A stretch of 64,000 nucleotides of DNA from Ascoidea asiatica JCM 7603 (Eukaryota > Fungi > Ascomycota), in assembly GCA_001600695.1 (NCBI GenBank), contig BCKQ01000002.1, positions 2,360,151 through 2,424,150 on the forward strand. The letters are read 5' to 3'. How positions within the stretch are numbered: position 1 is the stretch's first letter; each line of letters begins with the position of its first letter. The notes under the pieces are model-generated. The model was not told the origin of the DNA and made no database searches. It worked only from the letters and a program-made list of their open reading frames with translations. The position numbers and the translations under genes were made by a program. Below are positions 2,422 through 51,785 of this stretch, piece by piece.

Positions 2422-2812
2422 GAATGAATGAGTTGTATATTATTTGATTGAGTTGTAAGTTGTATTTTATCAATTATGTTTATTATTTATTTTTGTTTAT
2501 TTATCTATTTATCGATCATTATTCATTATTCATTATTCATTATTCATTATTTATTATTCATTATTTATTATTCAATATTATTCAAATTATGAATTTAGCC
2601 ATGGAAGAGAAAGTAAAAACTATAGCACGTGATTTGGAGAAATAGAAGAACATCCGTGGTAAACCATTATCCGCGTAAATCCGGGATAGATTTTGTTTTT
2701 ATGATTTTGAAGTGAGTAAACACAAAAAGAAGAAGAAAGAGAAGAAAGAGAAGACAATTGATATTCTTCAGTGGCACTTCATTGCTTTATTGCTTTATTG
2801 CTTTATTGACTG

Positions 2813-3196
2813 ATGGCGCCACCGATACCCGTGCTCACCAGGGACCAAGTGGAGTTGGTCTGCAACACCAGAGGCATCAGAGACCCCTTCAGCAGTGTCG
2901 GCAACAAGAACAACAACAACAACAGCCAGGAAGAGTGTGAGTTGAAGAGTCTTGTTCAGTTTGAATGCTCCTATAACACTCAACTCGACAATGTGAGCTG
3001 TTTCCCCTTCAAAAGAATCTTTAAGAAGTGCAAAGTCCAGGAATTAAGAAATGCAAAAACTGTTGGTGAACCTGTAGAAAATGAACCTGTTTATCAGTTG
3101 ATTGAAGTGACAAATGAAAGAACAAATAACATTTTCAAGAACATGGAATTAAATCAAATTGAAAAAGAAGTTAAACAATTCAATTATCCCAATTGA
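2813..3196 (+). CDS. SOM1: Mitochondrial inner membrane peptidase (IMP) subunit Som1
   Basis: MAPPIPVLTRDQ start and CELKSLVQFEC...CFPFKRIFKKC...IEVT match the Som1 pattern (MAPPT..TRDQ / CxLKxLVQxEC / CxPFKRxF). Confidence 0.85.
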   Translation: MAPPIPVLTRDQVELVCNTRGIRDPFSSVGNKNNNNNSQEECELKSLVQFECSYNTQLDNVSCFPFKRIFKKCKVQELRNAKTVGEPVENEPVYQLIEVTNERTNNIFKNMELNQIEKEVKQFNYPN

Positions 3197-6554: not shown

Positions 6555-7721
6555 TTAATTTAAATGCTGACTTGTTCTTAAATTTAATGTAATTGAAAAA
6601 TAATCTTCTAAAGGAATTGAATCAAAATCACATAATCCAAATATATCAATTAATTCACAATATTTTGTAAAACATGAATTTTTTTTATCATTTGTACAAT
6701 TATTTAATTTAATCTCATATTTTTTAATAAATTTTGTAATAAATATATAAGTAAATTTAAAAAGAAAAGAATCTTCAGATGTTGAAGATTCTAATCCCAT
6801 AAGTTCTAAAGATGATAAACTTTGAAAATCTTTCAATAATGATTCATTTTGATTATTATTGTACTTGTTATTATTAAAACTATAATTGAAATAGATTAAT
6901 GATTTCTCAGGTATTATAAATTTATTATTTTCATCTTTTGTACTTAATTGAATTTCATTTTGATTTTGATATGGAAAACTTAAAGGAATTGGTGACAAAA
7001 TTAAAATAATTTCTTTTATTTTTTTAATAATTTCTTTATTATAATCTTCAACATTATTTTCAGTAGAATTTTGATTAATATTGAAATTTAAATTAATTAT
7101 ATTTAAAATTTCATTTTGAATTGATGGTTTTTCACCTAAATATTTTATTATTGAAATTAAAAATGGAATTAAAACAGAGACTAAATCATTGAATAATTCT
7201 AAAGTTAAACATTTTATTTCATCATTTGATAAATTAGTTTCATTATTTTTAATTAATGAATCAACTATACAAATATTATAATCTTTATATAATTGTGTTT
7301 GTTCAATTCTTTGTTTTATAATTTCAAAAACAAAAAAATTTCTTTCATTGATTATTGATTGAATATAAGATAATTGTGAATGAAGCAAAGGAGAATTTTG
7401 AAATGATCCTCTAAAATTGGACCATGTTTTAAAAGGAAATTTAAAATCTTTTAAAAGGTTTTTATTTTTTTTATTTCTAATCTCAAAAAATTGTTTAAAA
7501 AAATTTTTATTATTATTAGATTCTTTTATAGAATAATTAAATAATAAAATTAATGAAAATTCAATTATATCTTCATATAATAACTGAAATAATTCGATTG
7601 AATCTATTACATTTTTTTTCTTTTCTGTTTCTTTTTCTTTTTCTTTTTCATTATAATTAATTGATAAATTTTCAATAATTTTAGATATTTCTTCATGAAG
7701 GTTGAAATTTGAATTATTTAA

Positions 7722-7795
<74 letters not shown>

Positions 7796-8237
7796 CGACA
7801 TCTATAACTTTTAAAGATTCAATTAATGAATTTTTCATTCTTTTGGTTTTATAAACATTTAATCGATTTCTTAATTTCATTCCAAAACAAGCATCAGTAA
7901 CACAATATATTGGATTTTTAATGAAATCAATAATTTTAGATCCATTGGATTTAATTTCTTTTATTAAACATGGATCATTGATAATGATTGCATCTATTGA
8001 ACCTAATTTAATTTGAAATAAAGGTAAATTTTCTTTGATTTTGATTAAATCTTTAACAGTTTTAATTTGAGTTAAATTACCAAATATAAAATATCTTTTA
8101 AAGGGAAATTTTGGTATTCCATCTATTGAATTCTTTGAAAATAAACTCTTAAGTGTTAATAAAGAAAATAACAATACTAAAAAACTTATAATTGGAGAAT
8201 TTGAAATACTCCTAAACACCTGAGATAAAAGAAACAT
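6555..8237 (-). CDS. Highly degenerate cytochrome P450-like membrane protein with no heme-binding motif
   Basis: N-terminal TM anchor then GIPKFP...IFGNLTQI, LFQIKLGSIDAIIIND; K-helix-like IKEIILILSPIPLSFPY; FIIPEKSLIYFN; no PERF or FxxGxxxCxG. First ATG at 8237. Confidence 0.6.
7723..7794. repeat. (AAT)n microsatellite encoding poly-Asn
   Basis: ~24 perfect TTA/ATT units. Confidence 0.95.
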
Positions 8238-9085
8238 GAATGAGAACAATTCAATTCAAACCGAAAAAATGTTTTTCTAAATCTGGAAGAAGATCAATGA
8301 GCAAAGAAATTTGGAAGATATTGCTGAAGTTTCTTCTTTTTTTACTTCTTCTTCTTTGTTTACTTCTTCTTTTTCTTTTTTGTTTACTTCTTCTTCTTCT
8401 TTTTATTGGGGTTTGAATAATTTACCATAAAAGCAAAAACAAAAACACCGCAGCACATTCATATAGTATCATGCATAGTAAAATAAAATGTAAAAGAACT
8501 ATATGCCTCTAGCCCATAGTAAACTAATTTGATATTTTGTGAAGACTGGTAAAATAACACAAAGAATAATATAATTTTATTCACAATTCGACTTGCAATT
8601 TTCACTTGAAAGATTAAAAAAATTACAAATCATCATTAAGGGAATTAATATCATGATCTGTCTGTCAAATAGTAAGCATTCAAAAAATATATCCTTTGAT
8701 ACAAGTGAAAGCTTTTAAATTTTACAACACTCTTCTTATAATATAGTTTGAAACTTTTTGAATTTCTTACATTCTGAATGGTTAACCCTTTCGGCTAAAA
8801 TAATTAAACAAGAAAGACTAATAAAGCTCGGTATTAAAAAGTAATTGTTTTGATTTATTCTAGCAAAATAAAACAAAAGAAAACGAAAGTTTAGAAAAAG
8901 CTTACTTTTACTTAAAAAAAAAGGGTTTCATGTAAAAAAGTTTATAAAAACTACAAAGTCTTCTTTATTACAAGTAATATTTTAGCTTTAGGAATGATTT
9001 TGAATATATATCCGTACTTTTTAAGGTACTTGTACTATTTTATGGAACAGTTTATTATTAAAATAACATAATAGACCCTTTAGAG

Positions 9086-9903
9086 TTTTCCGGGGAAGCA
9101 AAATTATTTGAAACTTGTCATGATAGTTGTCAGTTTATATATCAAGAAGAGCATACATTTTGTGATAGATTCAATAGTGAATTTTCTGAAAGCTTTTGAG
9201 GCCGAGTCCTAAATTTTAGAACCGGATTTTTAGGCCAGTCCAAATCAGGCCGAGATTTGTATGCAGGTCCGTTTGAGTCTAAAACGGCAGAGGACCTAAA
9301 CCTTAAATTGTTCCATTTAAGTTATTCCACTTACAATAGCCACAATAGTGGCTGTTGCATTGATCCAACCAAACTTTTTATTTCCAGATCAGAAAAACCT
9401 TGAAACTTTTCAAATGACCACTGTTATTTTGTTTCACTTTTTTTTGTTCAAAAATACTTTGGAGGTATTCAATCAATATTTTTTGCAAAATCCACGAGTT
9501 TTCAACCGTTGGATTTCAAACCTTCAAAAAAATTAACTAATGAATCATAGAAAACGCACAAATAATATTGCTACTATTTTTCAATGGTTTAAAGAAAAAT
9601 GGAATGTACTATTTTTGTGCTTTTTATACTATTGTTATTTAAGTTTGGTTATAATAAAAATAGAATTGATAATGGAAACAATAATGGAAATATATTTATT
9701 TAAATTCATTTTTAGTATATAGCTAAAAAAACTGAAATATTATAAATATCCTAGAAATGTAGAAATAATTATCGTTTTGAAATTATAGAATTCTAGGACA
9801 TCAAGTTAATTATTTTATGAATATAGTCATTTATAGATATACCTTAGTTATTTAAAATGTCTTTTTCAAATAATAATGAACCATTTGATGAATATTCAAA
9901 GAA
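9086..9903 (+). repeat. Left arm of long inverted repeat (near-identical core 9201-9903, diverged extension 9086-9200)
   Basis: Reverse complement of 21810-22650; the ORF track gives identical 62-aa and 60-aa translations and the same MSFSNNNEPFDEYSK start in both arms; about 5 mismatches seen in the core. Confidence 0.97.
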
Positions 9904-12205
9904 TCAATCAGATCCAAATTTTTTTGCATTAGATGATTTTGAGCTTGATCATCTCTTTGACAATGAAAACAACGATCATAACCCTGTTGACAATATTGAA
10001 CCTAATATAAATGATGAGAACACACCAGTTATTACCGAGGATATGCTTGAAATAGTAAATAATAGGCCAAGTTCAGCGGATCAAGAATTAGAAGTAGGAA
10101 ATAATGAAAATACAGGAAGTGGAGATGATCTAGTTGAAGATTTTTCATTTTCATTATTAGATTTATTTGAGGTCAAAGAAACGTTAGAACAACTATCAGA
10201 TATTCCCAATACTCCACAAAGTAATCAATCAAACAGAAATTCATCTGCCAATAATAGTAGTGAAGGATCAAGCGGGGCTCCATTAGATAATGAACAAGCA
10301 TTTCCAATCCACGATTCAAATAACCAAATAAAAAATCAAATACCAGACTTTCCTGGTAGTTTCCAGAATAACCAATCAAACAGAAATTTATCTGCCAATA
10401 ATAGTAGTGATGGATCAGGTGGTGCTCCATTAGATAATGAACAAGCATTTCCAATCCACCATCTAAATAACCAACTAGAAATTAATCAACCTAATCAAAC
10501 GATGAATGTTGTTTTAAACAATACTTCAGTTCAACAACAAACAAATCAAGGGATTAGTTATAGTATTCAATTATCCAGAATAGATTCATTGGATAATGAT
10601 GCAGATGATGAATCAAACATGGTTGCATTAAATGAAGAACATCTTGATTATCGCAACACAAATAACCAACAAAACAATAATTTAGCTATCAATAATCCTG
10701 TTTCTAATAATCAATTTAATATAAATCCATTTGATCAAGGAACAATAAGTCAATCAGCTAATGATCAAACTGGTTATCAAACAGTGACAACCCAATTGGT
10801 TTATAATTCAATAGATAATATTAATATAATGAATACTAGTCAATCAAACAATAATCCAATAGGAACTAATTTTGCAGGAAACAATTTTGCAGGAAACAAT
10901 TTTGCAGGAAACAATTTCGCAGGAACTAGTTTAACAGGAAATACTTCAGCAGGAACTAATTTTGCAGGAAATAGTTTAACAGGAAATAATCTAGCAGGAA
11001 ATAATCTAACAGGAAATAGTTCAGCAGGAAATAATTTATCAGGAACCAATTTTGCAGGAGCTAATTTAGCAGGAATTAATTTTGTAGGAACTAGTTTAGC
11101 AGGAAATAGTTCAGCAGGAACTAATTTTGCAGGAAATAGTTCAGCAGGAGCTAATTTAGTAGGAAATAATTTAACAGGAAATAATTTTGCAGGAAACAAT
11201 TTTGCAGGAGCTAATTTTGCAGGAACTAATCTAATAAGAAATAGTTTAGCAGGAACTAATTTAACAGGAACTAATTTAACAGGAACTAATTTAACAGGAA
11301 TTAATTTAACAGGAACTAACTTCGTAGGAACTAGTTTAACAGGAAATACTTCAGCAGGAACTAATTTAACAGGAAATAATTTTGCAGGAGCTAGTTTAAC
11401 AGGAAATAACTTAATAGGAAATAATTTAACAGGAATTAATTTGGTAGGAAGTAATTTAACAGGGAATAATTTTGCAGGAAGTAATTTAACAGGAAATAGT
11501 TCAGCAGGAACTAATGTTGCAGGAAATAATCCCCCGGGTTATAATTCACTTAACTCAACAACATTTGGAAACTTTTATCAGATATCTGGTAATATATTAC
11601 CCAGTAGTATAATACGCAGTGGTAATACGAACTTTCAAAGACAAATAAATCCAATTCCAACTATTCCTCTTGTTAATTTTTATACAGCAGCTGAAATTTT
11701 ACGGTTAGAAAACATAAAGAAAGAAGAAGAATTAAGAAAAAAATTAGAGATAATAACAAAAAAAAGTAGTAAACCTTATAGATGTTGTCCTGACTCTGGA
11801 GATATTCAAGATGAATTAGAATTACTTCTCCATTTAGATAAATGTATTTATAAAAGAAATCACAGATATTTTTGTTCAGATAAAACATGTTTTAGAAGCT
11901 TGTTTGGATTTACTCAATCATCAGATACTACCAGACATAAAAATGAAGTTCATATTATTCGTGCAAACAAAATGGCAGAAAAAGCTAAAAGAGAAGCACA
12001 TCAAAGAAATCTTCAAAATCAAGAAGGTCAGAGTAAAAACTTACGTAATAGAATTAATGAAAATGACTTTCTAGAATGTGAATATTGTGGTATTATGTTG
12101 AGTAGAATATATTCACTTACTAGACATTACGCAAAATGCAAAAAAAAAAAAGAAGCTGATAAAGATAATTCTCAAGCTGATAAAGATAATTCTCATGTTG
12201 ACTGA
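9857..12205 (+). CDS. Rme1-like zinc-finger protein with an acidic/Asn-rich N-terminus and a 44-unit pentapeptide repeat
   Basis: C-terminal fingers YRCC...LLHLDKC, YFCSDKTCFRSLFGFTQSSDTTRHKNEVH, LECEYCGIMLSRIYSLTRHYAKC; the HLD...YxCx4C...GF...RH...H layout resembles Rme1 as recalled. Confidence 0.75.
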   Translation: MSFSNNNEPFDEYSKNQSDPNFFALDDFELDHLFDNENNDHNPVDNIEPNINDENTPVITEDMLEIVNNRPSSADQELEVGNNENTGSGDDLVEDFSFSLLDLFEVKETLEQLSDIPNTPQSNQSNRNSSANNSSEGSSGAPLDNEQAFPIHDSNNQIKNQIPDFPGSFQNNQSNRNLSANNSSDGSGGAPLDNEQAFPIHHLNNQLEINQPNQTMNVVLNNTSVQQQTNQGISYSIQLSRIDSLDNDADDESNMVALNEEHLDYRNTNNQQNNNLAINNPVSNNQFNINPFDQGTISQSANDQTGYQTVTTQLVYNSIDNINIMNTSQSNNNPIGTNFAGNNFAGNNFAGNNFAGTSLTGNTSAGTNFAGNSLTGNNLAGNNLTGNSSAGNNLSGTNFAGANLAGINFVGTSLAGNSSAGTNFAGNSSAGANLVGNNLTGNNFAGNNFAGANFAGTNLIRNSLAGTNLTGTNLTGTNLTGINLTGTNFVGTSLTGNTSAGTNLTGNNFAGASLTGNNLIGNNLTGINLVGSNLTGNNFAGSNLTGNSSAGTNVAGNNPPGYNSLNSTTFGNFYQISGNILPSSIIRSGNTNFQRQINPIPTIPLVNFYTAAEILRLENIKKEEELRKKLEIITKKSSKPYRCCPDSGDIQDELELLLHLDKCIYKRNHRYFCSDKTCFRSLFGFTQSSDTTRHKNEVHIIRANKMAEKAKREAHQRNLQNQEGQSKNLRNRINENDFLECEYCGIMLSRIYSLTRHYAKCKKKKEADKDNSQADKDNSHVD
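10222..10475 (+). repeat. 150-bp-period internal duplication (NQSNRNxSANNSSxGSxGAPLDNEQAFPIH x2)
   Basis: Two near-identical ~100 bp blocks starting ~10222 and ~10372. Confidence 0.9.
10865..11524 (+). repeat. 15-bp coding minisatellite, 44 units, consensus [NTA]-N-[LF]-[AT]-G
   Basis: e.g. act aat ttt gca gga / aac aat ttt gca gga / act aat tta aca gga; register unbroken over 660 bp. Confidence 0.97.
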
Positions 12206-13068
12206 GTGAAATGAATAATCTAACACCTTTTGTCTGTTCTTTGAAACCTGTTGATTAATTGCTTGCTGAGTTTTAATCTATTCACTACTAAATAGTTGAT
12301 GCAGGAGAAGCTCCTTAGGTTCCTTAGCTTCCCTAACCATGAACCCCATTAATAGTTTTTTGATTCCTTCTCTAAATAGTCTTTTTTTTATTAGTTTTCT
12401 AAATAGATTTGTAATTGTAACTTTAATATAAAAAAACATTAAAAATTTTGAGTAACTGCTATTGTAATAACTGTAATTGTAGAATGTAATTCTCAAGGTT
12501 TATTGTTATTGTTTATTTCGGTTTTTATTCCCCAACCAGCAGCATGGATTCATTGCAATCAGAGACCAATTATATGGAACATGTTTCCATGCATACATAC
12601 TTTATTTAATGTGCTTGGATGTATATTGATGTTTAAAAGCGTTAGGTGTCACACCCCTGCATATATTGCTTTTGAAAAAATGCACGTGCGTATTTTATTG
12701 ATTATGTAACAATTCTCCGGTGCTGACTCATCTTTTCTGGCTTTTGGTTTGTGGTGAGCATGTGAAAGAAAAGAAGGAAAAGAAGGAAGAGAAAAGAAAA
12801 AGGACCCAACGCCGCCAGAGCCCAATGAATTCAAACTCCAGCAATAAAAGTAAAAGTACCTTTATTTCACTTTAATCAATTAAATAATTCAATCAAATAT
12901 CCAATATCAAATATCAAATATTAATAATATAACTGAATATATTCTTATAAAAGGTTTCAATTCATTCATAATCTTGATTCAGAATCTTTTCTTTTCAATT
13001 CTGTTTTAATATATTATTTACTGCTTTTATTATATCCATGATAATGCTCAATCAATTTTAATCTAAGA

Positions 13069-13132
13069 ATGATTAATTCAACAATAAGTAAATCATCTTC
13101 AAATATATCCCTTAATACATCTCATATAATCA

Positions 13133-13213
<81 letters not shown>

Positions 13214-15606
13214 GTATTTTCAATTCAGAAAATCAATTTCAAAATAAATATCAATATGATTATTCTTATGAATTTAATTGTAATTATAAATTAAATTCAA
13301 ATTTAACATTAGATTCAAAAAGAATCTCAATTTTAAATTTACCAAATGAATTAATTATAAAAATTTTATTAAATTTGAATAAAAATATATTAATTAAAAA
13401 AATTCAATTTTTAAATAAATTCTTCAATGATTTATCAAATGATTTAATTTATAATAAAATTTATATTAATGATTATAAAATTAAAAAATTTTCTTTAAAT
13501 AATATTTATAATAACCCATTTAATAATATTCATAATAATTGGACTTGTTTAAAAAATGATTATCAATTTTCTGATACTTATTTTTTTACTTCTTTTTTAC
13601 CTTTAAAATCTGATATAATCTCAACTTTAAAAAAAATTGAAAATAATAATAATAATATAACAACAACATCAAATTCTTCAATATTATCAAAATCATTATC
13701 AAATAAAAATAAATTGTACTTTTATAATATTAAAAGAATCTTAAATTTCATAAATTCATTAAATAAATTAATCAAATCAATTAATAATTTAAAAAATTTA
13801 AATAGAATCAATTATATATTCTTAGATTGGAATTTTAATTCATTATCTGATGAATCTGATTTATATATTATGAATTTAATTTATAATAATTTCATAAAAC
13901 CATTAAATAAATCAAATTTCAAATCTATTTTTAAATCAAATAATTCTCATTACATTCATTTTAAATTTAAAAATTCAATTATTCAAAAATCATTTATAAA
14001 ATTCTTATCAACAAAAAAATTGAATAATTTTGATTATTATAATAATTTCTTAGAATTAAAATATACTAATGATTATTATATTTGGGATGTTAATTTCAAT
14101 TCTTTAAATTTAAAAAAACTATTATCAAATTCAAAAATGATCAATGATAATAATGATAATAATAATAATAATAATAATAATATTAGTAATAATTCTTATA
14201 ATAAAAATGATTACTCAGGCTTATATTTCAATAAGTTTAAAAAAAAAATATTATCAAATTCAAATAATATAAATAAAATTGATTTACATTTTTTTAATTC
14301 TAAAAATTTCATGCCAAATATTTCATTTTTGATTAAAGTTTTATCTTTTTTAATTCCCTCTAATAATGTTAATGATACAGATTATAATAATAATAATGTT
14401 ATTTTTCCAAATTTAATTGAATTAAATATTTCTATAGATTTTGATAATCCTTTAGATTTTATAAATAATTCAATTTCAATAAAATTCTTTAAAATGTTTA
14501 TAAATTTAAATAATTTAAAAAATTTAAATATTAGCCAATGGTGTTATCATTATGTCAATTGTAATTGTACTCAAAATTGGTTAAATTTTATAAAAAATTT
14601 GAAATTAAATTATAATATAAATTTTTCAAATTTAGAAAAAATTTCCTTAATAAATTTACCAATTTCAAATTTTAATATTTTATCAGAAGTTTATGAATTT
14701 TTATTTAATTTAAAAAATTTAAAGATTTTAAAATTAAATTATAAAGATTTGAATAATCATTATACAAATTTAAATTCATTCAATTCAAATTTAAATTTAA
14801 ATAAAGAATTGCTATTTCAACAGTTTCAAACAGTTTCAAATATTTCAAATAATTTAAATATCTCAAATTTAATTTATATTGACTTAACATTTGATTTCTA
14901 TAAAATTTTATTAAAAGAATTATTTTCTTATCATAAAGTTTCTAATGAGGAAAATAATAATTTAATTAATCTAAATAATAATAGTTTCAATCAAATGAAA
15001 TGTAATTGTAAATATTGTTCATATTTCAATAATGGTTTTTTGAAAATATTAAATTCATTATTAAGAAGAAATAGATCATTATTACCTAATTTATGCACAT
15101 TTATTTTGGGAGTATTAAGTAACTTAAAAAATAACTTTAGAACAAATAATTTATCAAACTTATCAAATTTCTTAGAATTTCCAACTGTCGATTTGACTTT
15201 GGATGTAATTAGTTTCAAGAAAGCCAATTTAAGTAATTTTTATAAAAATAATAATTCCAATATCAATAGAAATAGAAATTTTCTCAAAGAAGAAATTTTG
15301 ATTAAAGAATTGAATAGAAAACTTGATGTGAATTTAATTTTAAAATGTTATTCTCATTCAATTTCTTATAAACCAATTATAAATAAATTAATAAGTAAAG
15401 CACCAAATTTAATGATTTTAGTTATTGATGATTTACCATTAATTATTGATAGAAAGAAACAAATTAATGAATTTAACTTTGATGTTTTATTTAAATTCAA
15501 AAATTATGATGAATGGGAGACTTTAGATTTATCTGATATTCATTCTGATGATTTCAAAAATCAAATTGAATCCTTATACTCCAATATAAAGCCTAACTCT
15601 CTTTGA
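13069..15606 (+). CDS. Divergent F-box protein with LRR-like C-terminal repeats
   Basis: F-box motif ILNLPNELIIKILLNL...NKFFNDLSNDLIYNKIYI; FPNLIELNI, NLKNLNIS, NLKNLKILKL, APNLMILVI repeats. Confidence 0.7.
13134..13210. repeat. (AAT)n microsatellite encoding poly-Asn
   Basis: ~25 perfect AAT units. Confidence 0.95.
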
Positions 15607-16688
15607 TCAATTTTCAAATTGATTTTTATGTTACCTTTTTTTTTACATTTTTTTTTATTGATTTCATATGATTTCAATCCTCATTTTTTCATTTTTTATT
15701 AATTTCATTTACTTCAAATCAAAACCCGTACATTTTCTTGTTTTTCAATTTCAATTTCATTAAACTTTTCAACTTTATTTTACATTTTCATTTTCATTTA
15801 CTTTTTTTTTTATCTTTATGGTTGGTCAAGCAAAGGTCTTTTTTTATCAAGTTTTTCAAATTCACCTTTTGGAAGTAGCATATTTCGATGGATATTTTAA
15901 CTTTCACTTTAATACTATAAAAACAATTTTTTATGTTTTATGAATACATTTTATATGATTTATATTTGACTTGCATCGTGAATTTTATTTGTTTAAGCCC
16001 ACAGAAAGCTTATCTTTGTGGTCAAACTCCAGTTGCTGTTCCGTGACGCAGGGCCGCGCATAAGGAAAAGCTGGATCAGAACCCTGAAGATTCTTTTGAA
16101 GTGTCAATTTTTTGTTTTATTCAATTCACTGAGTAATTATTTACTTTCCAGTTTCCTGATTTCAATTGAGGTTTGGTTTGAAAACTCACAATTACAATAA
16201 TGGAAATTTAAATCATAAGCTTGACGTTAATATTTTACAATTTTGTTTTTATAAAATCTAGATTATTTTTGAGGTATATAACAAACAATCAGAGAATAAG
16301 CTTGAATATATCTCATCAGGTATTCTGAGACATATATAGATCTAACTAGTGTTTAGACGTTCTCAGCTCTTGTTTAATTCGTTTATCTCTAATATTGTTT
16401 TCCTGTTAGTCAAAAGGTTGTATTTAGATTGGTACATTTAGTAATACTTTTCAACTTTTCAACGAAATGCCAACTTTTTTTCTAAAATTCATCAAGCTTC
16501 CAGTTTACTCGCAACAAAAAAATGCAGTTTATCGGTAATTATTTCTTTTAATAATTTGATCATCTTTTTCTAAAATGAATTAAAAGTACTAGTACTTTAT
16601 CTTAAAAACAATTGGAATTTTCATTAATTAACTATTTATAATTAATTATGAAAAAATATAATATACTTTGTTGAAAGGAGAATTTGAA

Positions 16689-18200
16689 TCATCGTTTCAT
16701 ATTACGTAATTGATCATAATTTTCATTTAATAAGATTTGATTTCTTGTAACATAAGTTGCTTCTCTGATTTTAGTTGAATTTGATTTTTTTAAATCTATT
16801 ACACCCATTTCTAAATTTAAATTATTACCTAAACTATTTCTTAATTTATATTTACTTATATGATGATTTGTTGATGGAATTAATAATGAATCTCTTATAG
16901 TTGAATCCAATAAACTATCATTACTCTTCATAGGTTGTAAATCATTAGAATTATTTGAATATGACGTAGATATATTATCTAATTGGAATATATTATTATT
17001 AATCTCATTATTGTTATTATTATTGATAGTATTAGAACTATTATTATTAAGTTTAAATATTGAATTTTTATTTGGATTTGTTATTGGAGAATATGAAGGT
17101 TGTTTTGAAGAATTATAACCGGTATATATTGCAGATAAAGCAGATTGAGGAGGTTGAATTGGATCGTTGAAAGAATGAGATGAAAGATTCAAACTTGAAT
17201 TATTATAAAAATCAGAATTTGTATCAAATGAATTAATACTTTTATTACCGGAATATTCTTTTGAAATTAAATTATTTTGACTATTATAATTATTATTATT
17301 ATCGAAATTCAAAATTGGTAAAGTTGGAGCCATACCTAATCTTGAATTTTCTAATTGAACTTGAATTAAAGATTTATTATGATAATCTCTTGATAATTGA
17401 TTAACTTTATCATTAACATTAACACATATAAATTGTTTTAAAGAATATGTTTTACCATTATCTTTAAATACTTTTAATCTATTATAAACATAAAAAAGAA
17501 ATAATAAACAAGCTATGATAAATTCAGTTATAAAATAAATCCAAATTAAAATTGAAAGACACATTACAGTTAAAACAAAAGCATATTTTTCATTTTCTTT
17601 TAAACCTGATTTAATTAAATTTTTAAAAGTATCAATAAAAGTTCTACCATTATCAGATTTTAAAATTGAAATTAAAGTTAAAGTATTTATAATTTGTCTT
17701 GGAGTATCAGCAAAAATTAATTTTATTGAACCTTTAAAAGTAAAATAACAAAAAAAAGCAGATTTATCGAAAAAACCTTTTTTGGGATAAATTTCATTAT
17801 AAACGCAAAAATATTTATAAGATTTTAAAGACCAAATAAATCTTGAGATTGAATTAATATAAGTTAAAGAAATATTTCTTGTATGATAAGTTTTTATACC
17901 AATAATCCATTCATAAATTAATAAAATTATTGAAAGTAAAATACAACCAGAAAATAACCATCTTGAAACTTGAAAAGGTATTGAAGGTTGAATTTGATCA
18001 TTTGTCCATTTATTAAAGCCTAATAATTGAATACAAGTATAAATATCAGAAGCAAATAAAGCAGTTTTCATAATATATACAAGCCAAGTATATAATAAAG
18101 AAAGCAATGTTGATAATTTATAATTTTTAAATTGATTCAAATCTATTAAATCAAAAGTATTATTATCGATTTTCCATTCCCATGAATCTCTTCCAAACAT
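16689..18200 (-). CDS. KCH1: Kch1/Prm6-family low-affinity K+ transporter
   Basis: ALFASDIYTCIQLLGFNKW, SRWLFSGCILLSIILL, NISLTYIN, YFCVYN, LIFADTPRQIINTLTL match Kch1. Confidence 0.9.
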   Translation of the reverse strand: MFGRDSWEWKIDNNTFDLIDLNQFKNYKLSTLLSLLYTWLVYIMKTALFASDIYTCIQLLGFNKWTNDQIQPSIPFQVSRWLFSGCILLSIILLIYEWIIGIKTYHTRNISLTYINSISRFIWSLKSYKYFCVYNEIYPKKGFFDKSAFFCYFTFKGSIKLIFADTPRQIINTLTLISILKSDNGRTFIDTFKNLIKSGLKENEKYAFVLTVMCLSILIWIYFITEFIIACLLFLFYVYNRLKVFKDNGKTYSLKQFICVNVNDKVNQLSRDYHNKSLIQVQLENSRLGMAPTLPILNFDNNNNYNSQNNLISKEYSGNKSINSFDTNSDFYNNSSLNLSSHSFNDPIQPPQSALSAIYTGYNSSKQPSYSPITNPNKNSIFKLNNNSSNTINNNNNNEINNNIFQLDNISTSYSNNSNDLQPMKSNDSLLDSTIRDSLLIPSTNHHISKYKLRNSLGNNLNLEMGVIDLKKSNSTKIREATYVTRNQILLNENYDQLRNMKR

Positions 18201-19202
18201 CTTTATTGAGTATTATTGTTTTTTTATTATATGAATGTGAATTTGAACGTGAATAAAAATATGAATAAGAACGTATATAAGAATTTGGATAAGAATAAGA
18301 AGAATATAAAAAGGAGGATAAAATATTAAATGAAGAGTAGTGAAATCCTATAATATTCTTATTATATTACTATTGTGTTAATATGATGATTTGTATAAAT
18401 AAAGAAAATATACATAAAAGTTTTCGAATACAAATATATGACTTGTGGGTTATTATTTATAATATCATTTCATTCATTAACACAACTAAAAATGGAATAT
18501 TATTTAATTTCTAATTGATTGAAAAAATATCAAAAATATGATGAATACGTTTTTGTTCATTTGTCGATCTGAACTTTTGAAATAAATTATTTAAGACTCG
18601 AGTAAGTAAATGAGAAGAAGAAAATGATTTGGGAGATATAAATACTTTAGACAAAATTTGAATAATTATCCATTTAATAGGATTGAGAGAAGCAGTGCCA
18701 TTTTGTCAAATACTGTATTTTTTTTTTGCTAAATGTTACTGTTACTGTACTTTGTGGGTGGTGTTCCAGCTCCGTTTCAGAGGCCAAAACGTTACCAATC
18801 TCGAGGAAAGTCCCAAAAGGTTTTTTTCTGGTTTTCGGTGGTTTTTCGCCTGTCACTTGATCCACAAACCAGCCACAGATTGGGGGCCTGTACAAGATGG
18901 CAGCAGCATTGAGAAACTGGTAATGGCTGGTAGGGGCTGATGAGACTATTAATAGACTTTGTCAGCCTTTTTTTTTTACGACTGAGCTGCGCATCTGCTG
19001 TTTGATGCTGCACCGTTGAAGTCTATTTATTTTTAAACAACTACGCATTTTGCGCGTGTTACTTTACAATAAGAAATAAAAATACTATTAGTTAATAACA
19101 AGAATATTTCAATATTTATTCACTAGGTTTTAGCTATTTACTATGTATGCTAACTACAAATAATAATAGATTACTTGAAAGATTGGGATTTTATGATAGT
19201 TT

Positions 19203-19622
19203 TTATTTATGAATATTGGCTTGATTTGGGTGAAATGAAGAACATTTTGCACAAGAATCATAATTATAAAGAGGAGCCTTGAAAGAGTAAACTTGATATG
19301 GGTAATATTTATCTTGATTGAAATGTTTTGGAATATATCTTGGAGGAATAGAATATGCTGAAATATAACAGGCTGGGATAAATCTTTCTGGAATGTATTT
19401 GTTCTGCTTTGGTAAAAAAAAAGCTGGAATATAATGTGATGGTGCATATGCAGCTTTAAAATGTTTTTCTGGAATAAATTCAGATAAACTAATATGATGT
19501 GGGATAAATTTAGGAAAAACCTCTTGTTTAATTAAAACTGTTTTTTTTTGGTAAGGGTTTCTCATTGAAGAAGCATTAGAATAGTTTGGAATATATTCAA
19601 ATCTAACATTTGGAGAAGTCAT
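19203..19622 (-). CDS. Orphan 139-aa protein with [YF]IPxx repeats
   Basis: ATG in AAAAATG context; YIPNY, FIPHH, FIPEK, YAPSH, YIPAF, YIPER, FIPAC, SIPPR, YIPKH. Confidence 0.55.
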   Translation of the reverse strand: MTSPNVRFEYIPNYSNASSMRNPYQKKTVLIKQEVFPKFIPHHISLSEFIPEKHFKAAYAPSHYIPAFFLPKQNKYIPERFIPACYISAYSIPPRYIPKHFNQDKYYPYQVYSFKAPLYNYDSCAKCSSFHPNQANIHK

Positions 19623-20306
19623 TTTTAAATGAATTGTAATTTTTTTAATTGGTTAATTGTTTTGGTTTTAATAATTGTGATATTTTGGATAATAATTATA
19701 ATAATTGTAATAATTAGAATAATTGGAATAAAATAATCAAAAAATTCACTTAACCATCCCATTTATATATTATTTTCCAAATCATATAAATTCTTATATT
19801 TCTAATTATTCTAAAATTTTAAAAGACAATAAAATTTCAAAAAAATTTGGATATTCAGAATTTTTGGAAAAGAATATTATTCTTTCCCCTGAAAATATGC
19901 TTTCTATCATATATCTAAATTAATATTTCTGGTTGAGTATATATATAAATGTGTGGATCTAAATTAAGGTTTAGGTCTTGGTGACAGGTTCAAACAAAAT
20001 TAAAAATAGCCAATAACCCGCAATACTGGCGTCAAGGCCGGATTCGCGGGTTTTCTTTCAGAAATTTTTACTGCCTCAACGCTTGCGAACCGTATTACGC
20101 AGGGTAACCTGAATTAGACTCTCATACAAAATTAATCAACTTTTTCAGTTATTGCCAGGACTGAAACCCAAATAAATAAAGTAACTTCAAATTTAGACTC
20201 AAGTGATTGAAAGAATCTTATAGATTATATATTTTAAATGAAAGCTAGTGATATTATATTAGTTTAAAACATTCAATTTAAAAATAGAAATTAAAATAAA
20301 AAAAAA

Positions 20307-20774
20307 ATGGAATCTATTCAATCTGGATTCACTTCTTTTTTTCAAAGAGATGTTCTAAAAGATGCCTCCCAAGAATATAAACAAAGAAGAAGAAAACAAA
20401 TGATGTTATTTTATGGTGCAACTACTGTAACAATTCTATGTTCAAGACTTGTTGTTCGAGGAATAAATTCAAGAAGATATATACCTAATTTATTTCAAGC
20501 TAATCATTTACCTCCTTCATTTTCTCCTTATAAAGAAGCTATATCTGCTGTTTCCTATGCATCTTTTTTAGCCACAAGTTCATTTTCAATGGCTATTTTT
20601 GGTGGATTTTGGATGTGGGATGTATCGAATTTAAAAGAATTTAGTATAAAAATGAAAAAGTTTGCTGGAGGTGAACTAAAAGAACAAAAATTAGCTATGG
20701 AACCGCTTGATGATATGACAAAACAGATTGAATCGTCAATTAATAGTCTATTAGAAGATGATAAAGCTGAATAA
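20307..20774 (+). CDS. AIM11: Altered inheritance of mitochondria protein 11
   Basis: RRRKQMMLFYGAT, RRYIPNLFQANH.PP.F, EAISAVSYAS, FSMAIFGGFWMWDVS..KEF match Aim11. Confidence 0.88.
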   Translation: MESIQSGFTSFFQRDVLKDASQEYKQRRRKQMMLFYGATTVTILCSRLVVRGINSRRYIPNLFQANHLPPSFSPYKEAISAVSYASFLATSSFSMAIFGGFWMWDVSNLKEFSIKMKKFAGGELKEQKLAMEPLDDMTKQIESSINSLLEDDKAE

Positions 20775-21061
20775 TATATCATTCCAGAAAACTAATAAAT
20801 TAGTCCATATACTGTATATAAATAAAATATATTCATGTACATAAAATACAGCATAATTTCCTGAATCACTTATCTTTTCTAGCTGTAAACCTCCAAATGA
20901 TTGTTTGCAAGTTTTTAGTTTTTAATTCCTTACTACAATAAAATTGAGTTTAGTTCTACAAAGTAATTTCCATCTTTTATTAATTTCTAAACTGATATTT
21001 ATTATTTATATCTATATTTAAACTTATGTCTGTTTTTTTCTTTAATATTTCAATATTCATT

Positions 21062-21856
21062 TCAATATTCATCATCATCAGATATATAGTCATTGTCATA
21101 TTCAAGTTCATCTTCAGTTTCAGTTTCACTTCCACTTTGTATTTCACCTTCAGTTACTTGAAATCCATGAATATTTTCTAAATGTCTTTTAAGACTTTTT
21201 TTAGATTTAAATTTAGCTATTTTTCTAAAACAATTGTCTTGACTACAGCCATATATTCTTTGATTAGATTTTGGACATTTTCTTAAATGATAAAGAAATA
21301 AATATGCTTCTTCAAAATTTTTATCGCAACATATATAACTACGATTATCTTTAAATTCAAGATTTTCAACCAATTTTTTACATTCTTTAATCTCTTTTGG
21401 ATTTCCTACAAAAGTACTACTTGATAGAATAATAGGTGCAGCTGGTATATTTTTAAAATTATCATTTCTAGATTGACTATTTTTAGAAGCTTTAATATCA
21501 TTATTACTTGTAGTATCAATATAATAATTACTACTCTTCAAGGTGGAACTTCTTGGGGTATTTAAATGTCGAGAAACAACTTCTTTAGAATTTATCATAT
21601 TATAGTTATTCAAATTTTTATTCAAATTATTATTCAAACCAATAAAAGTTTGACTTGGCGAATCATCCACACTAGAATCACTAGAATTACTTCCAGGCAA
21701 ATCATCGCTATTCAAATTGTTTTTTTTTACAATGCTATTTTCATTTAATTGACGTTTTTTAGAAAAATCTTTATTCTTTAACTCTTTTAATTTTCTTTTA
21801 GCTTTTTTTTTCTTTGAATATTCATCAAATGGTTCATTATTATTTGAAAAAGACAT
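21062..21856 (-). CDS. Rme1-like zinc-finger protein, short paralogue of 9857-12205
   Basis: Same first 15 aa as 9857; YICC...FLYHLRKC and YGCSQDNCFRKIAKFKSKKSLKRHLENIH fingers; basic NLS-like KKKKAKRKLK; acidic tail. Confidence 0.72.
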   Translation of the reverse strand: MSFSNNNEPFDEYSKKKKAKRKLKELKNKDFSKKRQLNENSIVKKNNLNSDDLPGSNSSDSSVDDSPSQTFIGLNNNLNKNLNNYNMINSKEVVSRHLNTPRSSTLKSSNYYIDTTSNNDIKASKNSQSRNDNFKNIPAAPIILSSSTFVGNPKEIKECKKLVENLEFKDNRSYICCDKNFEEAYLFLYHLRKCPKSNQRIYGCSQDNCFRKIAKFKSKKSLKRHLENIHGFQVTEGEIQSGSETETEDELEYDNDYISDDDEY

Positions 21857-22650
21857 TTTAAATAACTAAGGTATATCTATAAATGACTATATTCATAAAA
21901 TAGTTGACTTGATGTCCTAGAATTCTATAATTTCAAAACAATAATTATTTCTACATTTCTAGGATATTTATAATATTTCAGTTTTTTTAGCTATATACTA
22001 AAAATGAATTTAAATAAATATATTTCCATTATTGTTTCCATTATCAATTCTATTTTTATTATAACCAAACTTAAATAACAATAGTATAAAAAGCACAAAA
22101 ATAGTACATTCCATTTTTCTTTAAACCATTGAAAAATAGTAGCAATATTATTTGTGCGTTTTCTATGATTCATTAGTTAATTTTTTTGAAGGTTTGAAAT
22201 CCAACGGTTGAAAACTCGTGGATTTTGCAAAAAATATTGATTGAATACCTCCAAAGTATTTTTGAACAAAAAAAAGTGAAACAAAATAACAGTGGTCATT
22301 TGAAAAGTTTCAAGGTTTTTCTGATCTGGAAATAAAAAGTTTGGTTGGATCAATGCAACAGCCACTATTGTGGCTATTGTAAGTGGAATAACTTAAATGG
22401 AACAATTTAAGGTTTAGGTCCTCTGCCGTTTTAGACTCAAACGGACCTGCATACAAATCTCGGCCTGATTTGGACTGGCCTAAAAATCCGGTTCTGAAAT
22501 TTAGGATTCGGCTGGCTTTCTGTCACTCAAATCTCCAAAAATGCATCTCTCAAAAACTTTCAAAAATCTATCATAAAATGCATATTTTTCTTAATAAAAA
22601 AACTGACGACTATCATTGCAAGTTTCAAATAAATATGCTTCCCCAGAAAA
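21810..22650 (-). repeat. Right arm of long inverted repeat (core 21810-22512)
   Basis: Reverse complement of 9086-9903. Confidence 0.97.
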
Positions 22651-22744
22651 GATGAAAGAGTTCTTCCAATATTAGTTACTTTCAGAGAAAAGAGTCATAA
22701 AATGCAAAATATCCGCCCGAAGAATAATTTTGGTTCCGGAGATG

Positions 22745-23234
22745 TGATTGTAGTTCGAACGAAATATCTAATTATTACTAAGAAGATATCTAACTCAAAT
22801 TATAAACAATTGTTAATTGAAATATAAAACATATACAAATTATATAAAAAATATGGGAGGTAAGTGCCCTATTTATATTAGTGGAAAATAGGAGCGGGTA
22901 ACCCATCATAAGAATAAATTTGTAAATTTAGTATGTGAAAGTTCACTTCCCATACTTAAGAAAAGAAATAGAATAAAGTATTGTTCTAGAAGACACTACG
23001 TCATTCTAAGAACAAACACGAAAATTCCAGTACATTTGAGATGCACACAGAACTTCGATGAAAGAATAAATAATGCAGACCCAGAACGTTCTAGTACATT
23101 TAAAATGCACACGGAAGTTCTGAGAACGCAATAGAATGTAGTCGTAGAACAATCTATGCAATCGTAGAAAGTCTATGAATAGCCTAAAATATTCGAAGAC
23201 AATTCTAATAAAACAATAAAATGATTAACAATCA
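22745..23234 (-). mobile_element. Solo LTR of a retrotransposon (490 bp)
   Basis: TGATTGT...ACAATCA termini (TG..CA, 7-bp inverted ends); GATG directly on both flanks (4-bp TSD); TATAAATAG on - strand; second copy at 42408-42731. Confidence 0.85.
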
Positions 23235-23551
23235 GATGCCTTTTTCCATAAAAAATGCTCGAAAATCCGCCCCTCGAGAATTCCGGTTTTCCCATGCCAA
23301 TCTTTAATTTAGTACATCTTTTAGAAAGAACTAGAAAAAGGGAAAAAAGAGAAAAAAGAGAAAAAAGAAAAAATTTGAATTGGAGTGATAATCGTAGATT
23401 TGTTATTTAATACTTATAAGGCTTTAATATACAGCAAGTAATAACTTTCAGATTAAATTTAACTCTTAGAATATCTGAAAGGGCACTCCAACTCATCAAA
23501 TTCAAGCATTTAAGGGCTTTTTAAATTTTGTGACAGGAAATATTCTTTTAA

Positions 23552-35986: not shown

Positions 35987-37183
35987 ACCAGAAATGATAA
36001 TAATTACTAATAATTATTGATTATTATAATATTAAATTATGATATAATATAGTATAGTATAGAATATTATAGTATAAGAGAGAAAGAAAGTGAAATGAAT
36101 TCAAATTAAATCATTTTTTTGATTAAATTGAATAGATATCTACTATAATAAATATTTAAACGCCGAAGAAGTTAAGCACTGATTGATTGAATATTAGTAA
36201 AGATTTGTAAAAGAATTAAAAGAAAATAAAAAACAGACAAATCTTTGAAGGGTTTAAAAATTACTTTTCAATCGATTTCAAATCCAATTTTTATTTTTAT
36301 TTTTGAATCACCGACTGAAAGTGAATTTGAAAGTGAATTTGAAAAATAAAACAAAAATTTGAGATGCAAAAAAAAGACACTCGGGTAAATCAAACCCCAA
36401 AGGAAAAAAGAAGAGACAAAGGCCTAGTTTCTCAAGGGATTTAACGTGGTTTAAACTAACTATTAAAAGTAGTATAATATACAGATAATCTACTTTTAGT
36501 TATACAATATATCTTATATTCACAGGGAAAGCAGCAGACAAAAGTCATTTAACCGGAGTGTGGGAGGAATTCCGGGAAAGTAGCATCGGAATGTGGGGAT
36601 TCTATGTCTTTATTGGGTAATTAAAGCTAAGTTTAAATATGCAAATGCACGTGGAAATTTAGCAGCCCTCGTATTTTGTGTTAGGTTTTTATTTCCTTTT
36701 ATGGAAACTGTTAGCGGACCGTTACCCTGCTTGATGTATGTGGCTGTGTGGCAAAGTAAATAATGGCGGGTGCAATGGCTAGTGATCTTTGTTGTGGCTG
36801 GTTATTATTTGTGGCTTGTGCTGCATTTAGTGTTTGTGTTTCCAGTGAATTTTTAAGAAATCAGCAAAAAAAAAACGTTTTTCTTTCTGCAGCAGAAACC
36901 ACCAAAAACAGTTTCAATTAAATCTTGGTTGCTGATGGGAATTTTGGTTCTTTGTTTATAACAAGAGAGATTCTAAAAAAATGAATTTAAAAATGAATTA
37001 TAAATTATCTTCATTCACTCTTTATAATAAATATCAATATCAATATCCATATCAATATCAATATATTTGCAAATTCAAATATATTAGTTCAAATTGCTTT
37101 CAATATTAAATTAAATTTATTCAAATATCTAGGTTATCCAATATATTCAAATAAATTATTCACATAAGTAATATTATAAAAAA

Positions 37184-42407: not shown

Positions 42408-42731
42408 TATTCTTTCATCGAAGTTCTGTGTGCATCTCGAATGTACTGGAATTTTCGTGTTTGTTCTTAAAATGACGTAGTGTCTTCTAGAACAATACTT
42501 TATTTTATTTCTTTTCTTAAGTATGGGAAGTGAACTTTCACATACTAAATATACAAATTTATTCTTAAGATGGGTTACCCGCTCCTATTTTCCACTAATA
42601 TAAATAGGGCACTTACCTCCCATATTTTTTATATAATTTTTATATATTTTATATTTTAATTAACAATTGTTTATAATTTGAATTAGATATCTTCTTAGTA
42701 ATAATTAGATATTTCGTTCGAACTACAATCA
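42408..42731 (+). mobile_element. Truncated copy of the same LTR (324 bp)
   Basis: Reverse complement of 22745-23068 with roughly 10 differences; ends ...ACAATCA; lies in the PYP1-like/FRS1 divergent promoter. Confidence 0.88.
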
Positions 42732-50482: not shown

Positions 50483-51785
50483 CGGTATTTGAATAGAATT
50501 ATTATTTCTATTAATATTGAAATGCATAATACATAATATGAGGTATATGTATATTGGAAAGGTTATTATTTTATTAAAGTTATAAATGATATAATGAAAT
50601 AGAAAAATTATTAAATTTGAGAGTCTTTTTGAAATTATGAGATTAGATTTAGATTTAGTGAAATTAAATTGAATTTATAAAAGAAATACATATCCATTTA
50701 TATATTTTGGTATTTTTACAAAAAATTGTTACCTTTTTCAATAAAATTTTTCGATAAATGAAATTAACAAATAAAGGAAAAATAGGTAAGATTATTATCT
50801 AAAATTTTAGAAATATTTAGGTAATTAAGTAGAGAAGTCTTATCATAAATCAGAAGTTGAACAAATTTATTCTCTTTTTTTGGTGAAAATATTTAAATAC
50901 AATTGAAAACAAACAAAATCAACACAATGGTCTTAAATTAATGAAGGTTCCATACTTTAGGTAAGTTTCTAAGCAAATTTCCAATTAATTTTATCTTAAA
51001 ACTTTGATAAAAGATCAACATTTTGAAGTTGTTTAAGACATTTTAATTCTTCAATCAGTATGTTGAAATTACTCAGAACATTGAAGTTTTTTCATTTCTT
51101 AATTGAAAAATTTATCCCATTTCTTCAATTCAGCACCTTTCTTTGACGCGAGTTTTGAAAATTACCATAGAAACAGTTATCGGGAACTGCAAACCCTTAG
51201 AAAATACAACATGTTAGCCAACAGTCTTGGCAATCTAAAGTTTGCGATCGTTAACGGGTCTTTTATTGTTCCCGTTATCGAACCTACTGAAAAATGACCT
51301 GCAAAAAAATTAACCAAGAAGCGGGTACAAGTACATTCGCGAAACAATAAATTCCAATCCCTAAATACCAAACACCAGGTCACCGAGACCATTAGGACAG
51401 TATTGACTAAATACCGGTTCAGTCTGTCCGGAACACTTTTGTAAGTAAAAGGAAGAGACCCAGAAACATGGCGTTAATATGCACCCAGGCACCAACCACT
51501 TGAGCAACTTTAAAAAAACAGCCACGTTTTGGTTTTGTATTTCGAAGTATTGTGGCTAGGTATTTTTACACGTGTGCGTGCTTTATTTTAATGAAATTTG
51601 TCAACTTGGTTACCTCGTCGATTGATCCCAATTCTATTTCACATGAAGAAGAGGAAGAAGAAGAAGAAGAACTTGAAGAAGGTGAAATATTTCATTAGAG
51701 AATAATAGAATTAAAAATATTTTTCAGATAATATTGAGGAATATAAGCCATATCAACATTAGTGAAATATAATTCAATATTAAAA

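Follow-up and report, generated by a model that had tools for sequence, protein, structure and literature searches.

Near-identical inverted 5' modules of two diverged zinc-finger genes in Ascoidea asiatica, probably maintained by ectopic gene conversion

The window analysed here is a stretch of 64,000 nt from Ascoidea asiatica JCM 7603 (assembly GCA_001600695.1, contig BCKQ01000002.1, positions 2,360,151 to 2,424,150), the genome of which is AT-rich (24% GC) and comprises 20.3 Mb. Two zinc-finger genes, designated A and B, were identified on either side of a single-copy spacer, and the 5' end of each lies within one arm of an inverted repeat (Table 1).

Table 1. Features of the zinc-finger locus (positions in the window)
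Feature	Position	Strand	Description	Basis
Older diverged flank, left	9086..9171	+	Homologous, outside left arm; 80-84% to 22565-22650; 23-nt indel before core	
GC-rich island	9171..9334	.	Distal end of module; up to 48% GC; mirrored at 22379-22561	
Left arm	9201..9903	+	656 nt upstream of ATG and first 47 coding nt of gene A	Repeat search, alignment
TATA-like sites	9716..9747	+	141 and 116 nt upstream of ATG, within identical core	Pattern only
Zinc-finger gene A	9857..12205	+	782 aa	ORF, Pfam, alignment
Single-copy spacer	12206..21061	.		ORFs, Pfam
845-aa ORF	13069-15606	+	Weakly F-box-like (E=0.097)	Pfam
KCH gene	16689-18200	-	Potassium-channel family (Pfam E=8e-77)	
139-aa ORF	19203-19622	-	Orphan	
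155-aa ORF	20307-20774	+	Earlier called AIM11; without Pfam support	
Zinc-finger gene B	21062..21856	-	264 aa	ORF, Pfam, alignment
Right arm	21810..22512	-	Same module ahead of gene B	Repeat search, alignment
Older diverged flank, right	22565..22650	-	Homologous, outside right arm	Alignment to left flank
Solo LTR	22745..23234	+	232 nt outside right arm, not part of repeat	TG..CA ends, GATG target duplication

The N-terminal region of the gene A product contains a 147-nt internal repeat present twice. In addition, about 44 in-frame repeats of 15 nt were identified in the gene (Pfam Pentapeptide, E=7e-20), and its three C-terminal fingers consist of two atypical ones followed by a C2HC finger. 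In the gene B product, a basic, lysine-rich stretch immediately follows the 15 common residues; two fingers are present, the third is absent, and the protein ends in an acidic tail. The two proteins are alike only in their first 14-15 residues and, with 27% identity over 113 aa, around the fingers, as had been proposed in the sequence-only reading that preceded this work. Pfam zf-C2H2 was matched by all five paralogues in the genome (best E=3e-8), the two genes of this locus matching weakly (E about 0.005), and the Cys and His ligands are invariant in all five. Since the ligand pattern was accompanied by matches of the family profile to Zif268, KLF4, WT1 and CTCF chains, A and B are assigned to the C2H2 zinc-finger proteins with a predicted role in DNA binding. 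Their finger domains are 25% identical to each other and 24-29% identical to those of the three dispersed paralogues. Judged by these values, A and B are ancient paralogues that point towards each other and belong to a fast-evolving C2H2 family. The genes had initially been described as Rme1-like. The zinc-finger part of this name holds, while the Rme1 part was not established: word-based protein searches with the zinc-finger genes gave no match, an exhaustive HMM search gave six weak generic C2H2 matches, none of them named Rme1, and an Atlas search returned generic C2H2 clusters only.

A repeat search showed that the arms are reverse complements of 703 nt with 99.3% identity, lying 11,906 nt apart. 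By position-by-position comparison exactly five mismatches were identified, at 9206, 9217, 9773, 9807 and 9810, leaving an uninterrupted perfect run of 555 nt (9218-9772). On the inward side, the match ends after 47 coding nucleotides (15 codons and 2 nt) and identity then drops to 20-45%. On the outer side, a 23-nt indel directly adjoins the core and is followed by an older flank, the identity of which is 80% (9075-9171 against 22565-22661) or 84% (9086-9171 against 22650-22565), depending on the interval. Gapped alignment of arms and flanks extends over 9086-9903 and 22650-21810. The arm boundaries, the approximate mismatch count, the diverged outer part with its indel and the inward stop at 15 codons, all read by eye from the letters beforehand, were thus reproduced.

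Arm identity is therefore arranged in tiers, with 100% in the centre, about 97% at the edges, about 80% in the outer flank and none beyond. The difference between flank and core is pronounced (Fisher p=2e-14), and mismatches are more frequent at the edges than in the centre (p=4e-4), the edge clustering of five mismatches being a post-hoc statistic. In a protein-level comparison, no relic homology was found beyond the arms, nor relic inverted homology inside the spacer. A 52-nt match between 8327-8378 and 23325-23376 was considered as a further relic and discarded as polypyrimidine low complexity. A search of the whole genome identified only two copies of the core, so that the match between the arms is not due to chance. 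No similarity to it was found upstream of the three dispersed paralogues. The core is thus not one of many dispersed copies, an outcome named beforehand as one that would speak against a specific relation between the arms.

Each arm carries 656 nt upstream of the start codon, with TATA-like sites in the identical core and a GC-rich island at the distal end. Most genes in the window have similar islands upstream. For the island of this module no Rfam match was obtained at E<=1, no tRNA was found as a sign of a small RNA or structured element, and its predicted fold is not unusual (z=-0.69).

For the spacer, the earlier gene labels stood in part. The KCH assignment was confirmed by Pfam, the F-box label corresponds to a weak match, and the name AIM11 found no Pfam support. 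An exact-protein look-up of KCH gave no match; its best homologue is 42% identical and lies on a contig that is not syntenic and has no zinc-finger neighbours. Outside the repeat, the predicted LTR on the right was identified as a solo LTR, of which at least 40 copies occur in the genome. The gene to the left had been called P450-like, a description not borne out by any P450 match even at E<=10.

Repeats of this size are difficult for short reads, and it had been considered that the identity of the arms might reflect an assembly collapse. The locus was found as k=31 contigs in three public runs (X1, X2 and X3), of which X1 may underlie the assembly itself. In runs X2 and X3, the core forms a separate contig of 686 nt (9218-9903) which ends exactly at the repeat edges and has about twice the depth of the flanks, with 95 versus 51 and 119 versus 63 for core and flank in the contigs of two studies from 2016 and 2023. 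Both proximal variant sets were present in contigs, the right-arm set (T/C/C) in a contig of X3. A collapsed, duplicated or chimeric repeat is thus highly improbable, given the agreement of the 2016 run with the independent run of 2023, the presence of both variant sets, and the distinct unique flanks and gene bodies of the two arms. Contigs of k=31 break at the 555-nt perfect core and cannot be phased across it; a lone joint listed between 7244 and 9527 was tried as an orientation signal and rejected as noise, since one of its sides comprises 20 nt. An inverted repeat bracketing a block of genes may also recall the ends of a large mobile element carrying the spacer genes. However, only two copies exist in 20.3 Mb, the arms are 5' ends of host genes, and no transposase-like ORF or domain was identified in the spacer by Pfam and ORF survey, which makes an element of this kind extremely improbable.

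The anatomy of the locus is probably best explained by ectopic gene conversion, which would keep the arms near-identical, leave both genes with the same promoter and be accompanied by occasional flips of the spacer. Each arm would represent one 5' regulatory module in which the distal GC island and the TATA-like sites are followed by the 5' UTR and the first 15 codons. If one arm were broken, the other would serve as the template for its repair by non-allelic homologous recombination (NAHR) and gene conversion. The borders would be sharp because conversion tracts end where homology ends, namely at the 23-nt indel on the outer side and, on the inner side, at coding bodies that cannot be aligned. 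As conversion between the arms would hold 656 upstream nucleotides in common, both genes should run off the same promoter. A minority of events would be resolved as crossovers, making inversion of the 11.9-kb spacer a plausible by-product. Since both arms contain the whole promoter, all genes would be left intact by a flip, and only sequence beyond -656 would be altered. The identity cannot be ascribed to purifying selection on non-coding DNA, because the gene bodies are as distant from each other as from dispersed members of the family. The tiers and the finger identities agree with the initial view, in which the paralogues are old, the core was homogenised recently and the diverged flanks are of greater age. 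The inverted pair is probably old, and its 5' module was probably homogenised later and more than once.

Continuing exchange need not be assumed if a single recent event transferred the 5' module from one paralogue to the other and the five mismatches have accumulated since. The divergence is only 0.7%, one strain cannot show recurrence, so that ongoing exchange is inseparable from one or two past events, and the fingers are no closer mutually than to those of the dispersed paralogues, which leaves room for a module of more recent origin than the genes. However, the flank of about 80% identity reveals one or more earlier layers of homology, the confinement of mismatches to the edges of the perfect centre suggests nested tracts, and homogenisation is also seen in other inverted pairs of this genome; a single event is accordingly regarded as the less likely history, although one with appreciable weight. 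Far less credit is given to a programmed, condition-induced flip/flop outside MAT, with orientation determining which of the two zinc-finger genes is expressed, as the sequence-only reading had envisaged. The geometry resembles that of the flip/flop MAT loci of Ogataea polymorpha and Ascoidea rubescens, and the solo LTR is present on one side only. These loci contain MAT genes, one arm being silenced by an adjoining centromere or telomere, and inversion is induced by starvation (PMC5720833, PMC6692504). In O. polymorpha, a 2-kb inverted repeat surrounds 19 kb (PMC5720833), and the 2-kb repeat of A. rubescens takes in the 5' end of a gene (PMC6692504). The present locus shares with both the identical inverted repeats around a block, which in those species spans some tens of kb, and with A. 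rubescens the inclusion of a gene's 5' end. In contrast to them, it has symmetric promoters, no known silencing landmark and, as had been noted at the outset, no MAT genes: the sole MATalpha1 match (PF04769) in the genome is on another contig, C50. The distance between the cassette and the end of its 2.50-Mb contig is about 121-134 kb, with only the solo LTR beside the right arm. After a flip each gene would retain the same upstream nucleotides, no obvious asymmetry on which a switch could act was seen at the locus, and the fact that comparable inverted pairs are common in this genome points to a general process. A programmed switch is thus very unlikely.

For gene conversion between the arms, the closest known case is the flip/flop region of Saccharomyces cerevisiae chromosome XIV, where a 24-kb non-MAT block lies between near-identical inverted repeats (Salzberg et al. 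2022, PMC9731477). Its arms of 4.2 kb contain two whole gene pairs and a tRNA; both orientations and homogenisation within the species were demonstrated. The homogenisation was attributed to gene conversion by NAHR, inversion was regarded as its by-product, and no phenotype was linked to the orientation (PMC9731477). The 11.9-kb block described here is likewise a non-MAT block between near-identical inverted repeats of fast-evolving paralogues, and the similarity within the repeat greatly exceeds that of the paralogous sequence around it (99.3% in the core versus 80% in the flank), as is characteristic of the yeast region. However, the arms comprise 0.7 kb with the promoter and 15 codons only, the gene bodies have diverged beyond alignment, and the observation concerns one assembled orientation of one strain.

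Two further inverted pairs were identified on the same contig. In one, arms of 1,893 nt are 100% identical around a 5.3-kb spacer, each containing a whole 299-aa ORF, of which a third, tandem copy exists; the arms described here differ from it in that a regulatory module is joined to gene bodies which have diverged. The other has arms of 1.4 kb with 96% identity and a spacer of 13.8 kb. Including the present locus, three homogenised inverted pairs thus occur in the 284 kb sampled, compared to one known common case in S. cerevisiae. Conversion limited to a segment of paralogous genes is also found in the human gamma-globin genes, where the repeat is direct and not inverted. A recurrent X-linked inversion in mammals is flanked by homogenised inverted repeats and recurs as the outcome of crossovers, according to the account of Caceres et al. 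given in PMC9731477, organism and scale being different from those here. As in these two systems, conversion would preserve identity over part of a duplication, and the tract borders would be sharp at heterologies.

On its own, the locus presents no new mechanism. It probably represents a clear-cut natural case of concerted evolution limited to a cis-regulatory module, in which two transcription factor genes that are mutually unrecognisable have the promoter, the 5' UTR and the first 15 residues in common. A more far-reaching interpretation, which is put forward tentatively and is rather unlikely to hold as a whole, would combine recurrent flipping of the 11.9-kb block, selection keeping the 5' module and a genome-wide homogenising habit. 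In that case, strains or cells would differ in the orientation of the block, the long protein with three fingers would always be made alongside the short one with two, which may be its antagonist, and the locus would be one instance of an unusual habit of this yeast, in which many inverted duplicates are kept homogenised. With this locus, it can be tested in a straightforward way whether diverged paralogues are forced into co-regulation by ectopic conversion. When the other pairs are included, the question arises of why so many homogenised inverted duplications are found in this genome and how often the intervening blocks flip.

Repeat finding in the window recovered the inverted repeat where the sequence-only reading had placed it. 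Its two arms, of 703 nt each, are 99% complementary with 11,906 nt between them, and a count by script gave five mismatches (9206, 9217, 9773, 9807 and 9810) and an uninterrupted match of 555 nt (9218-9772). Outward, ~90-125 nt more are homologous at 80-84% (9075/9086-9171 versus 22565-22650/22661), and directly next to the core the right copy is longer by a 23-nt insertion; the gapped alignment extends over 9086-9903 versus 22650-21810. Inward, identity stops 47 coding nt into the two inward-pointing zinc-finger genes, gene A (left arm) and gene B (right arm), and is 20-45% straight away. The two proteins have their first 14-15 residues in common; beyond these, only 113 aa around the fingers are alike, at 27% identity.

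In addition to the 47 nt of coding sequence, each arm contains 656 nt of upstream DNA, with TATA-like sites at -141 and -116 relative to the ATG and, at its distal end, a GC-rich island of up to 48% GC (window, 24%). Similar islands were found upstream of most genes across the window. These are short, with 42-59% GC (genome, 24%), and most precede an ORF start by 150-800 nt; one exception lies between two gene 3' ends. No tRNA was found in the arm, no Rfam match was obtained even at E<=1, and the island showed no unusual folding (z=-0.69). Judged by its sequence, the arm is a complete predicted promoter, 5' UTR and N-terminal tag, which we infer to be used as such.

Coordinates of the features (plain numbers, the window; C, contigs of the same genome; L, extracted stretches counted from their own starts)
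Feature	Location	Strand	Remark
Left arm	9201-9903
Right arm	21810-22512
Gene A ORF	9857-12205	+	782 aa
15-nt repeats of gene A	10715-11524		in frame
Gene B ORF	21062-21856	-	264 aa
Left-neighbour ORF	6555-8249	-	564 aa
GC island of arm	9171-9334
GC island	2739-3022
GC island	12712-12852
GC island	18715-19029
GC island	19949-20170
GC island	36498-36849
GC island	51181-51583
GC island	15957-16135		between 3' ends
Solo LTR	22745-23234		490 nt
Further LTR copy	42408-42731
LTR pair	C12:352801/358826
LTR pair	C14:44811/50753
LTR pair	C21:144223/150138
Zinc-finger paralogue	L005:1477-2742	-	421 aa
Zinc-finger paralogue	L006:727-1914	+	395 aa
Zinc-finger paralogue	L007:1516-2817	+	433 aa; fingers N-terminal, not C-terminal
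MATalpha1-box match	C50:5906-6133 (L015:1258-2019)		E=3e-13
1,893-nt inverted pair	C2:2046808-2048700 / 2053974-2055866 (L019:909-2801, 8075-9967)
1,893-nt third copy	C2:2055967-2057859
1.4-kb pair	C2:1965326-1966722 / 1980478-1981859 (L026:1645-3041, L027:6797-8178)

Genes A and B are both of the C2H2 type. Three further paralogues were identified, all on contig C4; the metal ligands are invariant in all five proteins, each of which matches Pfam zf-C2H2 (genes A and B weakly), and a profile of these five atypical-finger paralogues matches the Zif268, KLF4, WT1 and CTCF chains. The label Rme1-like is unconfirmed: word-based searches identified no relatives, the six matches of an exhaustive profile search were weak and to fungal C2H2 proteins with generic names, and an Atlas search gave generic clusters only. 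In the finger domains, A and B show 25% identity to each other and 24-29% to the dispersed C4 copies, and are thus no closer to one another than to those copies. In gene B, two fingers are accompanied by a Lys-rich stretch and an acidic tail. Gene A encodes three fingers, and its long N-terminal part is swollen by internal repeats, two of 147 nt and ~44 of 15 nt; the latter score as Pfam Pentapeptide (E=7e-20), an odd companion of a C2H2 DNA-binding domain.

Within the spacer, the KCH-family gene proposed as KCH1 is clear (E=8e-77), while for the supposed F-box gene, an 845-aa ORF, an F-box-like match was seen that stays below threshold (E=0.097). A 139-aa orphan and a 155-aa ORF without a family match are also present, and no relic of a further inverted duplication was found there. 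The left neighbour had been called P450-like; it gave neither a P450 match nor any other significant Pfam match, even at E<=10. On the right, the neighbouring gene codes for an MFS transporter. The expected LTR is a solo LTR (TG..CA ends, GATG duplication), separated from the outer end of the right arm by 232 nt and not belonging to the repeat; copies of its family number at least 40 in the genome, at 92-96% identity, and several same-strand pairs ~5.9 kb apart resemble full-length elements.

The 703-nt core occurs in exactly two copies in the genome (20.3 Mb, 71 contigs), and the locus is present in three public runs from two samples and two studies (2016 and 2023). An assembly artefact is disfavoured. 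In two of the runs, assembled as k=31 contigs, 9218-9903 forms a separate 686-nt contig that ends at the repeat edges, with about twice the word depth of the unique flanks (95 versus 51; 119 versus 63). At 9773, 9807 and 9810 one run has the left-arm letters and another the right-arm letters, so both variants are present in the reads. These contigs derive from a 31-mer graph that does not link the two sides of the 555-nt perfect repeat, and are therefore uninformative on orientation.

The mismatches fall into tiers, with 0/555 in the centre, 5/148 at the edges and ~19/97 in the outer flank (flank versus core, p=2e-14; edges versus centre, p=4e-4 in a post-hoc test). Purifying selection cannot hold 555 non-coding nt at 100% while the joined protein bodies diverge beyond alignment, which argues for copying of the core from arm to arm well after divergence of the genes. 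For the tiers, no fewer than two layers of exchange are needed, most simply read as nested conversion tracts. The favoured mechanism would be non-allelic homologous recombination with gene conversion, with tract borders where heteroduplex formation would be blocked, by the indel outside and by non-homology inside. The near-identical core between 80-84% flanks and diverged bodies thus supports the proposed concertedly evolving regulatory module.

The same conversion mechanism has been proposed for the flip/flop region of S. cerevisiae chromosome XIV, with 4.2-kb inverted repeats, where the block is inverted by the few percent of conversions that end in a crossover (PMC9731477). Inversion of the cassette is plausible, and by this analogy the 11.9-kb block has probably changed orientation now and then. 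All genes would stay intact in such an inversion, and with the whole promoter present in either arm, only sequence beyond -656 would be altered. The suggestion of a non-MAT switch was not supported: the cassette differs from the regulated switches of O. polymorpha (PMC5720833) and A. rubescens (PMC6692504) in having symmetric promoters, no MAT genes and no known silencing landmark. The single MATalpha1-box match in the genome is on a separate contig, C50, which would be consistent with diploidy and separate assembly of the MAT alleles. The cassette lies ~121-134 kb from the end of its 2,503,681-nt contig.

A homogenised inverted pair is of a known kind. On the same contig, ~305 kb upstream, there are three copies of a 1,893-nt sequence, 100% identical and each with a 299-aa ORF: two lie in tandem with 101 nt between, and the remaining one, across a 5.3-kb spacer, is inverted. 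A two-copy inverted pair of ~1.4 kb, 96% identical across a 13.8-kb spacer, was found in the same 200-kb sample of the contig; it is mostly without long ORFs, and more diverged fragments adjoin its right copy. Including the cassette, this gives three homogenised inverted pairs in 284 kb examined, a partly biased sample in which two regions were picked for a known pair. What is special to the cassette is that the homogenised tract comprises only a promoter and 15 codons, joining transcription-factor bodies that otherwise look unrelated.
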